A stretch of DNA of 64,000 nt from Polymyxa betae A26-41. Its lineage: Eukaryota; Protista; Endomyxa: Phytomyxea. Position numbers and translations under genes: made by a program. The notes beneath the pieces were generated by a model, which was not told where the DNA came from, made no database searches, and was given only the letters and a program-made list of their open reading frames with translations. Position 1 is the first letter of the stretch, and each line of letters starts with the position of its first letter. The stretch lies in contig RBZT01000846.1 in assembly GCA_003693705.1 (NCBI GenBank), positions 1 to 64,000 on the forward strand. The letters run 5' to 3'. This document shows, piece by piece, positions 61,429-64,000 of the stretch.

Positions 61429-63100
61429 ATGTGGCAGCCGCCGCCGCCACCGCCAGGACCAGGGCCTCGATCATCGGTGCCACCTCAGATGTATAATCCA
61501 GCTGCTGGCGTTGCCTATGGGCAGCCGCATCCATACGGGGCACCAATGGCGAATCCCGCCATGGCTGGTATGCCTATGGCTCCTGGCATGCCAGCTATAG
61601 ATCCGAACACTGGCGCCTGGATAGAACCATCCCAATATGTACCTGCAAATTTCGATGTAGGTTCCTGATTACTGATTTATTGACTTGTTGCTTGCAGCTA
61701 GATCTGTTTTTGATTTGTTCGACTTCGTTCTGATGAATTTTAGCGATCTTCACTGTTTCGCAATCTGTGCACGTAATATACCGCTCGTGATTCGATCTGT
61801 TAGTAACCAGTTTGATTTTGTAGATGAGTATGTATCAGGAATATCAAATGTACAATGGAATGTATGCATATCCTGAGACTACTGGGGACGATTATGATTC
61901 CGATGACGATGAACTCCCAGTCTCGCATCCAGCATTGAATCGTCTTAATCTGAATGAAAAGACTGCAAAGAAAACCGCTGTCGAGATGGTCTGCGATGCT
62001 CAGTTCAATGTCAATAATGTGCTTGCTACTAACATCCTCAATTCTGATTACTTCCGAGAACTCTTGTGAGCTGTTGAATCTGTCTTTGATGTTGATTCTA
62101 ACACGTAATTAGCGCTTTGAAAACCTTTCACGAAGTCATGCAAGAAGTTCTGAAGAAGGTGACCCATCTAGAAGCATTGACAATCGGTCAGACTCGTCTA
62201 CCCAGTACAGCATTTTGCCTTCTTTACAAATTATTTACATTGAAGTTAACGGTGAAACAGCTCTGCTCGATGCTGTCGGAGAAGAAACCTCCCTTTGTTA
62301 GAGGTCTTGGACTTCTCTATTTGCGATTCGTCCATCCCCCTAAACAGCTATGGCATTGGTTTGCACCGGTACTGAAGGACGCCACCGTTTTCTATCCGTC
62401 TGGTCAATCAGCCCCATCTATGACTTTAGGAGACTTTGCTAAAAAGCTGCTAACCGAGCTGCAATATCCCGGCATCCTTTTGCCCCGGATTCCTGTTCCC
62501 GTTCTGCGCGAATACAAAAAACTTATTCTTACGGGCGCCGACTCCCGTACGGAACCTGTATTCAACGACAACGACAATGAAGAAGAGCTCCCTGAATCGT
62601 CATCAATTGCTCCTGGTTCTTTAGTACGTGCCCAATATTATGACGACGGGAAATACTACGATGCTGTAATCAAGGAGATATTTCCAGGCGGCAAATATCG
62701 TGTGGCTTTTGTCGACTATGACGACGAGGAATCCGAGGTTCGCGGCTCAGCCATTAAACCTATAAGCGAAAGGAAACAAAAAGAAAAAGATCGTAAAAAC
62801 AAAGAGCGCGATATTGAGGAGCAGATTCGCCGGCAAGAAAGAGCGTCAGCGCTTGCGCACGGAAAAGATTATGCTTCGAGACCAGCGAGCTGTAAAGCCA
62901 CCATGTCCATCAACGAGCACAAACGTCGCCGGTCCAGGACCCCTCCACGTCGTGAACGCGAAGTCGTCAAGAAGATCATCAGGCCGCCTTCCCCGGTTCG
63001 TCCGGCCCCGTCTAGCCGTGCAAATCCCGAATTGTCAAAACGCCAGGCCGAACTGCTGGCCAGATACGGCGATGCGAGCGCCAATAAAAAGCCAGCTTGA
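61429..63100 (+). CDS. PRPF38B: Pre-mRNA splicing factor PRP38B-like with an added Tudor domain, 3 exons
   Basis: NILNSDYFRELL..KTFHEV, PSTAFCLLYKLFTLKLTVKQL and VRGLGLLYLRF; Tudor VRAQYYDDGKYYDAVI..YRVAFVDY; RS-like tail. Confidence 0.9.
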
Positions 63101-63400
63101 AACTTGGCTTGGTAAACCGCCTCTGTCGGGTAGTGCGAACCTGAGTCCGTGGTGTGTCTATGTTGGGATCTGTTGGGGTCCATATAGAGGCTATTGAATG
63201 AATGTGCTTTAGGGGTAGTGGGCTGCTCTTAATATTATCATCGGTGAAGTCGGAGCATCGGCCGCCAATCATCTCCTTCAGCAAACCCGTCATCGTTATC
63301 TGATCTTGACGAACCCCCAGCTGGTCACACAGCCGCCATCGCCGTATTCACAGCAGGTTGTTGCGCGGCCGATTTTTGATTGGCGCATCACGCGTCGCCA

Positions 63401-64000
63401 ATGATGAAGAGGCTCTGGGCCGAAGCTTTGGAATTGGTGCGCCAGGGCGGCGCTACGCACGTCCTTCTCAAATACACCGATAGAGCAGGACGCCATCACG
63501 AGGTCCCGGTCTCGATCGGGACCCTCAACGACGACAGTCTTGACACCGGCATCCGTCTCGACAATGGCGACCTGGTGTTCCCGAACCCGACCACGGCGGT
63601 CCTGAACCCGTTCTTGGCACATTGCCCTCTAATCTCCTTCTCCTGCGATCTGCAGCGACGATCGGACGATTTCATGAACTTCAGCCAGTTCGATGTGAAA
63701 GATATCGATGCGTTGACGACATCGGAAATGCTGTCGTTGTTCCCTGAACGTGAAGACGAATTCCGTCAGTCGAATGTCATGACGGGCGACCCTGAGCAGA
63801 AGCTGTCTGTATCGCCGGCGGTCATGATCCCACAGACGCCAGCCCCGGCGTCTCCTAAAGCGCCATCGGCACTCAAGCCGAAGCGAAGCGAATCGACAGC
63901 CTCGACTCCCGGCGAACATCGCGGCACCAGTTGCCATCAATGTAAAAACGCTCGCAGCCTCGAACATCTGGCGTACTGCTCGAAACTGTTTAGCAAGCGC
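63401..64000 (+). CDS. Partial ORF: glutamine synthetase I beta-grasp-like N-terminal domain, linker, start of a zf-4CXXC_R1 (CDCA7-like) zinc finger
   Basis: The frame is open from ATG 63401 to the window end and is absent from the ORF track: LKYTDRAGRHHEVPVS..PNPTTAVLNPF..SCDL, then GTSCHQCK..LAYC. Confidence 0.75.
   Translation, partial: MMKRLWAEALELVRQGGATHVLLKYTDRAGRHHEVPVSIGTLNDDSLDTGIRLDNGDLVFPNPTTAVLNPFLAHCPLISFSCDLQRRSDDFMNFSQFDVKDIDALTTSEMLSLFPEREDEFRQSNVMTGDPEQKLSVSPAVMIPQTPAPASPKAPSALKPKRSESTASTPGEHRGTSCHQCKNARSLEHLAYCSKLFSKR

Follow-up and report, generated by a model that had tools for sequence, protein, structure and literature searches.

At its zinc finger, the protein described here has its closest described relatives in CDCA7 and CDCA7L, which form class I of the zf-4CXXC_R1 proteins (the class is defined in PMC10538959) and act as sensors of hemimethylated CpG and as activators of HELLS. 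CDCA7 reads hemimethylated CpG through R274 and Q275 and touches the DNA backbone through R304 and S330 (PMC11343034); R274, G294 and R304 are its ICF residues, and it is by residues of this set that class I is defined (PMC10538959). Outside class I, architectures carrying this finger include plant DDR1-3 (DDT/WHIM1), IBM1/JMJ24 (JmjC), fungal CDCA7F and an Acanthamoeba CHROMO fusion, and in all of them the partner is a chromatin domain (PMC10538959). The survey by Funabiki et al. 2023 also lists 11 proteins of Plasmodiophora brassicae, including CEP03200 and CEO94768, under 'Other zf-4CXXC_R1' rather than class II, names no N-terminal domain for them, and reports P. brassicae to be without DNMT, UHRF1, HELLS and CDCA7 (PMC10538959).

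At its N-terminus, the closest described system is bacterial glutamine synthetase (GS). The N-terminal domain of GlnA (PF03951; PDB 1f1h, 2gls, 9n4x) consists of an N-terminal helix and a beta-grasp. Beta-grasp domains have been widely reused as adaptors, and the GS N-terminal domain shows little diversity in domain architecture (Burroughs et al. 2007, PMC1949818). Within the enzyme it packs against the catalytic domain of the neighbouring subunit, and its ligand interface is located in an insert (PMC1949818).

The locus reported here joins relatives of these two modules in a single polypeptide. Polymyxa betae is a plasmodiophorid (Rhizaria) that lives as a root endoparasite. The gene begins near the end of a 64,000-nt stretch of its DNA, hereafter the window, which comprises positions 1 to 64,000 of contig C32. 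The draft assembly is a bin of root-metagenome data (PMC6328671), and the genome as searched comprises 27,085,814 bases in 1,001 contigs. Like the non-class-I proteins listed above, the C32 protein joins a diverged zf-4CXXC_R1 finger to a second module, but its partner is a fragment of a metabolic enzyme.

Gene model and domain layout

The gene is an intronless ORF of 1,062 nt on the plus strand (C32:63401-64462) that opens with an ATG at 63401 and continues uninterrupted through 353 codons to a stop at 64460-64462. Positions 63401-64000 of the window contain its 5' part, and the rest of the ORF lies beyond the window. The first-pass annotation had quoted the frame from 63401 as open to the window edge; our translation is identical, and extension past the edge carries the frame to the stop given above. 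Upstream of the ATG the frame is open for only 7 codons, from a TTG, and no in-frame ATG was found there. Aligned homologues share a start at the same MMK/MK, and the family genes of P. brassicae consist of a single exon in two assemblies. A Logan contig of 1,317 nt (SRR18189690_438302) matches C32:63220-64536 colinearly at 100% identity, encloses just this gene and ends 74 nt beyond the stop codon. Its extent suggests a transcript of the C32 gene, with a putative 5' leader at 63220..63400 on the plus strand. Three short public contigs carrying P0001, P0002 and P0004, at most candidate transcripts, show no poly(A) tail, and both the start codon and the transcription of the gene are putative assignments drawn from family conservation and from the Logan contig. 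Eukaryotic neighbour genes lie on the same contig. The nearest upstream gene (window 62117-63100, plus strand) has an open frame of 327 codons, the end of which lies 300 nt short of the ATG.

The encoded protein begins with an N-terminal helix (residues 2-15) and a beta-grasp, which together form a domain of residues 1-89 (63401..63667, plus strand), identified by profile alignment, by the Pfam matches of homologues and by AF2/Foldseek comparison. It is followed by a disordered linker rich in Pro, Ser and Ala (residues 90-172; 63668..63916, plus strand), which has pLDDT values below 50 and no Pfam match, and then by the finger. The first part of the finger (PF10497; residues 173-200) occupies 63917..64000 on the plus strand, and the finger continues to C32:64171. 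C-terminal of the finger is a basic KRRK patch, from which nuclear localisation would be predicted; the tail is disordered. In the full-length model (pTM 0.31) the two domains are folded, and the linker and tail are of low confidence, so the domains are not expected to hold a fixed mutual arrangement.

Selection on the different parts of the gene was compared by counting synonymous-only and amino-acid differences between the C32 gene and its homologue P0002, which is 79% identical. These number 34 and 9, respectively, in the N-domain and 33 and 4 in the finger, as against 22 and 31 in the linker and 32 and 26 in the tail. The synonymous excess in the N-domain and the finger indicates that both are translated in frame and are under purifying selection. 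Within the otherwise disordered linker, one branch of the family (C690, P0004 and P0006) has kept a motif, I-F-P-[VL]-[TI]-V-A-G-R-P, in place of which the C32 branch has L-F-P-E-R. The conserved version is a candidate short linear interaction motif.

The N-terminal domain and glutamine synthetase

Residues 1-89 are homologous to the N-terminal beta-grasp of bacterial-type (type I) GS. From the single sequence this relationship is seen faintly. Residues 1-90 match Gln-synt_N (PF03951) with 19 bits (E 0.001), below the gathering threshold of 33.4 bits, the whole protein gives 13.8 bits, and the NCBIfam GlnA matches are similarly weak; Gln-synt_N is the sole Pfam match in the protein besides zf-4CXXC_R1. 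The family as a whole provides firmer evidence. First, when homologous N-domains are scanned singly, 9 of 10 match Gln-synt_N (best E 4.4e-6) and no other family is matched. Second, a profile built from 10 N-domains finds PDB chains of type I GS with a best E of 2e-10, its positions 7-83 aligning to GS residues 2-90. Third, a 12-sequence profile searched against 1.84 billion proteins ranks the family itself first and then canonical GS, from E 2e-10, and the best matches of the family N-domain profile are canonical bacterial-type GlnA. The giant Ig-repeat proteins P0018 and P0019, also returned by the profile search, are false positives. Fourth, the AF2 model of residues 1-90, built on the alignment of the ten N-domains (pLDDT 86, pTM 0.77), returns 83 Foldseek matches at E <= 0.001, and against the PDB every match listed is a GS N-domain (query-normalised TM 0.62-0.71, E to 1.5e-5); an independent model of the protein, from the ESM Atlas, also matches GS. 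The resemblance noticed in the first-pass annotation is therefore upheld by profile, structural and Pfam comparisons alike.

Among PDB chains, the 10-N-domain profile gives E-values of 2e-10 to 3e-8 for the enzymes of Azotobacter, Salmonella, E. coli, Pseudomonas and Synechocystis, and matches those of Bacillus, Staphylococcus, Mycobacterium and archaea more weakly. Grouped by type, E lies between 1e-10 and 1e-8 for Gram-negative-type GlnA and at 1e-3 or worse for Bacillus, Staphylococcus and archaeal GS. These values are a hint, and no more, that the donor of the N-domain may have been a Gram-negative-type GlnA. In a tree of 85 N-domain columns, the finger family stands apart from all sampled GS and falls inside no GS group.

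The draft genome contains two GS genes of its own. One is a type II GS (C233:13668-14595; GlnII model E 2.5e-56). The other, examined exon by exon, is a type I-family gene with several short introns on the minus strand (C839:383984-385800; L006), GlnT/PuuA-like and closest to the GlnT and gamma-glutamylputrescine-synthetase models. A genome scan with PF03951 recovers these two genes only and misses the C32 locus, which is detected in a genome scan only with the family N-domain profile. Conversely, the family profile has no match at E <= 1 to either GS gene, so the N-domain was not recently copied from a resident GS.

GlnA and the C32 protein share the helix and beta-grasp as well as a colinear series of motifs, namely L-[KR]-[FY]-x-D-x-x-G, a conserved Gly, P-[DN]-x-x-T-A-x-[LI]-[DN]-P-F and a terminal C-D. 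With the 10-N-domain profile, the alignment contains a single gap, of 12 residues, which falls after Asp50' and precisely at the hairpin GSSIxGWKGIxx. In the C32 gene the HMM alignment places this site at codons D54-N55 (63560..63565, plus strand). Of 153 profile-aligned sequences, 129 have 11 or 12 additional residues at this site, and nearly all of these are canonical GS, whereas the family core has 0 or 1. The spacing from the conserved Gly to the Pro is 10 residues in C32 and 22 in GlnA. It ranges from 10 to 26 in a divergent subgroup (P0010-P0012, P0016, P0017 and P0093), all members of which lack the GSSIxGW motif. The deletion of the active-site loop that had been reported from the sequence thus holds for C32 itself, but is not uniform across the family. 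D54 (window 63560-63562), the equivalent of the catalytic Asp50' of GlnA, is acidic (D or E) in most members.

A second difference from GlnA is that no catalytic domain accompanies the N-domain, as had been noted for the part inside the window; the complete 353-aa protein has no match to Gln-synt_C (PF00120) at E <= 10. Since the catalytic domain is absent and the hairpin with its active-site contacts is lost, the C32 protein is not an enzyme. Unlike GlnA, it carries the N-domain joined to a zinc finger, in a eukaryote.

The zf-4CXXC_R1 finger

The finger spans residues 173-257 and matches zf-4CXXC_R1 (PF10497) with E 7.6e-13 and 48.9 bits, above the gathering cut-off of 22.7; in the PF10497 scan of the genome it is complete at C32:63917-64171 on the plus strand. 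The first-pass annotation had recognised the opening of a CDCA7-type finger, and the remaining CxxC pairs are indeed present downstream in the same polypeptide. Of the two profile matches that it had proposed to check, the finger is therefore secure by itself, while Gln-synt_N is sub-threshold for the single sequence. Eleven Cys together with His179 form the zinc ligands of a finger of the three-zinc type. In 14 homologues, ten of the 11 Cys and H179 do not vary, and C235 is almost invariant. CDCA7 and CDCA7L share the 11 Cys and the His, and their fingers likewise open with G-[ST]-[ST]-C-H-Q-C. Human CDCA7 chains in the PDB are matched at E 1.3e-6, with the similarity confined to the finger. 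No match to the rest of CDCA7 was seen in the C32 protein, whose N-terminal partner domain is unrelated to it.

The residues with which class I proteins read CpG and contact DNA, and those affected in ICF, are replaced. In the alignment to human CDCA7 chains, R274 corresponds to K182, Q275 to N183, G294 to K210, R304 to F220 and S330 to A245. Across the family all five substitutions are invariant or nearly so, with no variation at K182, N183, K210 and A245. Between Cys3 and Cys4 there is an insertion of 7 residues, and C208 aligns 3 residues beyond human C289. Substitution of the ICF glycine (here K210) and a C-terminal shift of the fourth Cys, both seen in the C32 finger, are features of class II; the P. 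brassicae orthologues, however, are filed as 'Other'. A search of the P. betae draft genome for cytosine methyltransferase (PF00145) returned no match at E <= 0.1. With five CDCA7 residues replaced and no DNMT found, the C32 protein does not qualify as an orthologue of CDCA7 and would not be expected to read 5mC. The earlier claim of DNA binding in the manner of CDCA7 was too strong, and the loss of the DNA-contact residues would count against the putative nucleic-acid binding of the C32 finger more generally.

Distribution of the fusion

A word-based search retrieved 11 homologues, most of which extend from the N-terminal region through the linker into the finger. Named relatives of the C32 protein come from P. 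brassicae only. The architecture is present in all eukaryote-type full-length matches of the N-domain profile (P0002-P0012, P0016, P0017 and P0093). Overall it recurs in paralogues within P. betae, in P. brassicae and in about 20 environmental clusters from metagenomes and Logan assemblies. Several species encode it in one ORF, as seen for P. brassicae in two assemblies at chromosome scale. Of the P. brassicae members, P0006 (CEP03200, PBRA_002960) pairs with the P. betae paralogue C690, and P0009 (CEO94768, PBRA_003582) is the other.

The P. betae genome has at least 10 zf-4CXXC_R1 loci, three of which carry a GS-type N-domain (C32, C690 and C545). C690 (L019:808-1767, minus strand) encodes 319 aa in one exon. 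C545 (C545:2983-3675; L020:706-1824, minus strand) was viewed as two separate exon frames, with an apparent intron inside the finger just past the CHQCKNVK motif; among the N-domains of the three paralogues, that of C545 diverges most (39 bits to the 10-sequence N-domain profile). The genome scan places fingers without a GS N-domain at C1:222582-222821, C355:83672-83920, C455:166177-166467, C70:12772-12921, C620:26889-27110, C620:28072-28314 and C720:246435-246707, and no recognisable partner domain was found at these loci. The two C620 loci lie ~1 kb apart, and one of them has a duplicated half-finger. These loci, at least 7 in number, represent a lineage-specific expansion, in a genome with no detected cytosine-5 methyltransferase domain, of a finger type commonly associated with DNA methylation. 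In a tree of the fingers, those linked to a GS N-domain fall on one side of a branch, with five other P. betae fingers on the other (SH-aLRT 93). The pattern is consistent with one fusion event, after which the gene was duplicated and diversified.

In public records the P. brassicae members are named 'Zinc-finger domain-containing protein', and the precomputed Pfam annotation lists the finger alone. A protein-atlas feature search gave only low-scoring, generic zf-4CXXC_R1 clusters, and a literature search found no paper on the combination of GS-N with zf-4CXXC_R1 or on the P. brassicae accessions and locus tags. In agreement with the first-pass annotation, which knew of no such protein, the architecture is apparently undescribed.

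Proposed function

The reading that we favour, with moderate confidence, is that the finger of the C32 protein binds chromatin or nucleic acid and that its exapted GS beta-grasp works as an interaction module. As no cytosine methyltransferase was found in the lineage, the finger would act as a tether to nucleic acid or chromatin in some way that does not involve 5mC reading. The exapted beta-grasp would serve as a protein-binding or self-assembly module rather than as a metabolic sensor. A repurposed, enzyme-derived beta-grasp had been suggested from the window alone; its derivation from GS and its separation from a catalytic partner are borne out here, whereas its role as an interaction module is one that we infer.

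It is less plausible, and on balance unlikely, that the beta-grasp retains binding of a small molecule or soluble ligand and makes the protein a ligand-gated DNA-binding factor, or that the finger binds RNA or protein in place of DNA. The strong purifying selection on the N-domain and the failure of the finger to retain the DNA-contact residues of CDCA7 are both compatible with such readings, and the acidic residue that persists at the Asp50' equivalent would allow for a surviving contact with a ligand or of a GS-related kind. However, the ligand interface of the GS N-domain is the insert that is shortened in the C32 protein (PMC1949818), and it works only together with the catalytic domain of a neighbour. 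The insert also varies between 10 and 26 residues within the family, unlike a conserved pocket.

The first-pass annotation had proposed that the orphan N-domain docks on GS rings and couples nitrogen status to transcription, in the manner of Bacillus GS-TnrA/GlnR. Docking on GS oligomers of the parasite or of its host is distinctly improbable. The N-domain is truly GS-derived, its counterpart in the enzyme packs against a neighbour's catalytic domain (PMC1949818), the genome has a type I-family GS-like protein (C839) besides the type II GS, and most members are acidic at the Asp50' position. Yet the hairpin that reaches into the neighbour's active site is missing, the failure of the family profile to find either resident GS gene gives no sign of co-evolution, and a free N-domain would need to take the place of the one covalently attached in a stable oligomer. 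No nitrogen-related gene context was seen around any family locus, and the proposed coupling is not supported. Recognition of a GS-family catalytic domain, be it that of C839, of the type II GS or of a host GS, as a link from nitrogen assimilation to chromatin is a long shot too. If true, it would constitute a physical nitrogen-chromatin link in an obligate plant endoparasite without DNA methylation.

A CDCA7 orthologue that senses hemimethylated CpG and recruits a HELLS-type remodeller for maintenance methylation is highly improbable. Membership of the same Pfam family and the match to human CDCA7 chains speak for it; the five replaced residues, the shifted fourth Cys with the 7-residue insertion before it, and a genome in which no DNMT domain was found speak against it, as does P. 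brassicae, which has no DNMTs, UHRF1 or HELLS and whose fingers are filed as 'other'. An artefact, whether chance similarity, a contaminating bacterial glnA fragment or a non-coding ORF, is scarcely credible, for although the assembly is a metagenome bin (PMC6328671) and the single-sequence Pfam match is sub-threshold, the fusion is conserved in several species including the two chromosome-scale P. brassicae assemblies, the comparison with P0002 shows a codon-level signature of selection, the neighbours on the contig are eukaryotic, and profile E-values reach 2e-10.

In this family a GS domain that ranks among the most conservative in architecture has been separated from its enzyme, shortened, maintained by selection and amplified alongside a chromatin-type finger, providing a clean case of exaptation of an enzyme fragment. 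For the zf-4CXXC_R1 superfamily, this is a new architecture with an enzyme-derived partner domain. It also offers a well-defined family in which the finger must have a role different from the reading of hemimethylated CpG, since the lineage is without methylation machinery. Among plasmodiophorids, which parasitise crops and transmit viruses, the family has expanded, and its members, now annotated 'zinc-finger domain-containing' or 'hypothetical', are candidate lineage-specific regulators.

Bacterial GS-like proteins without the hairpin

Loss of the GSSIxGW hairpin also occurs in two bacterial GS-like proteins, P0022 and P0026 (429 and 421 aa), whose N-domains score ~53 bits against the family profile. 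Unlike the C32 protein, both retain Gln-synt_C in full (E 1e-55 to 1e-65). They cluster with canonical GS in the N-domain tree (SH-aLRT 93), apart from the finger family, and the loss of the loop therefore looks independent. The gene for P0022 (L025:4225-5514) directly follows FecCD and ABC-ATPase genes and adjoins a TonB-dependent receptor gene, a context that points to an uptake operon with a non-canonical GS-like enzyme.
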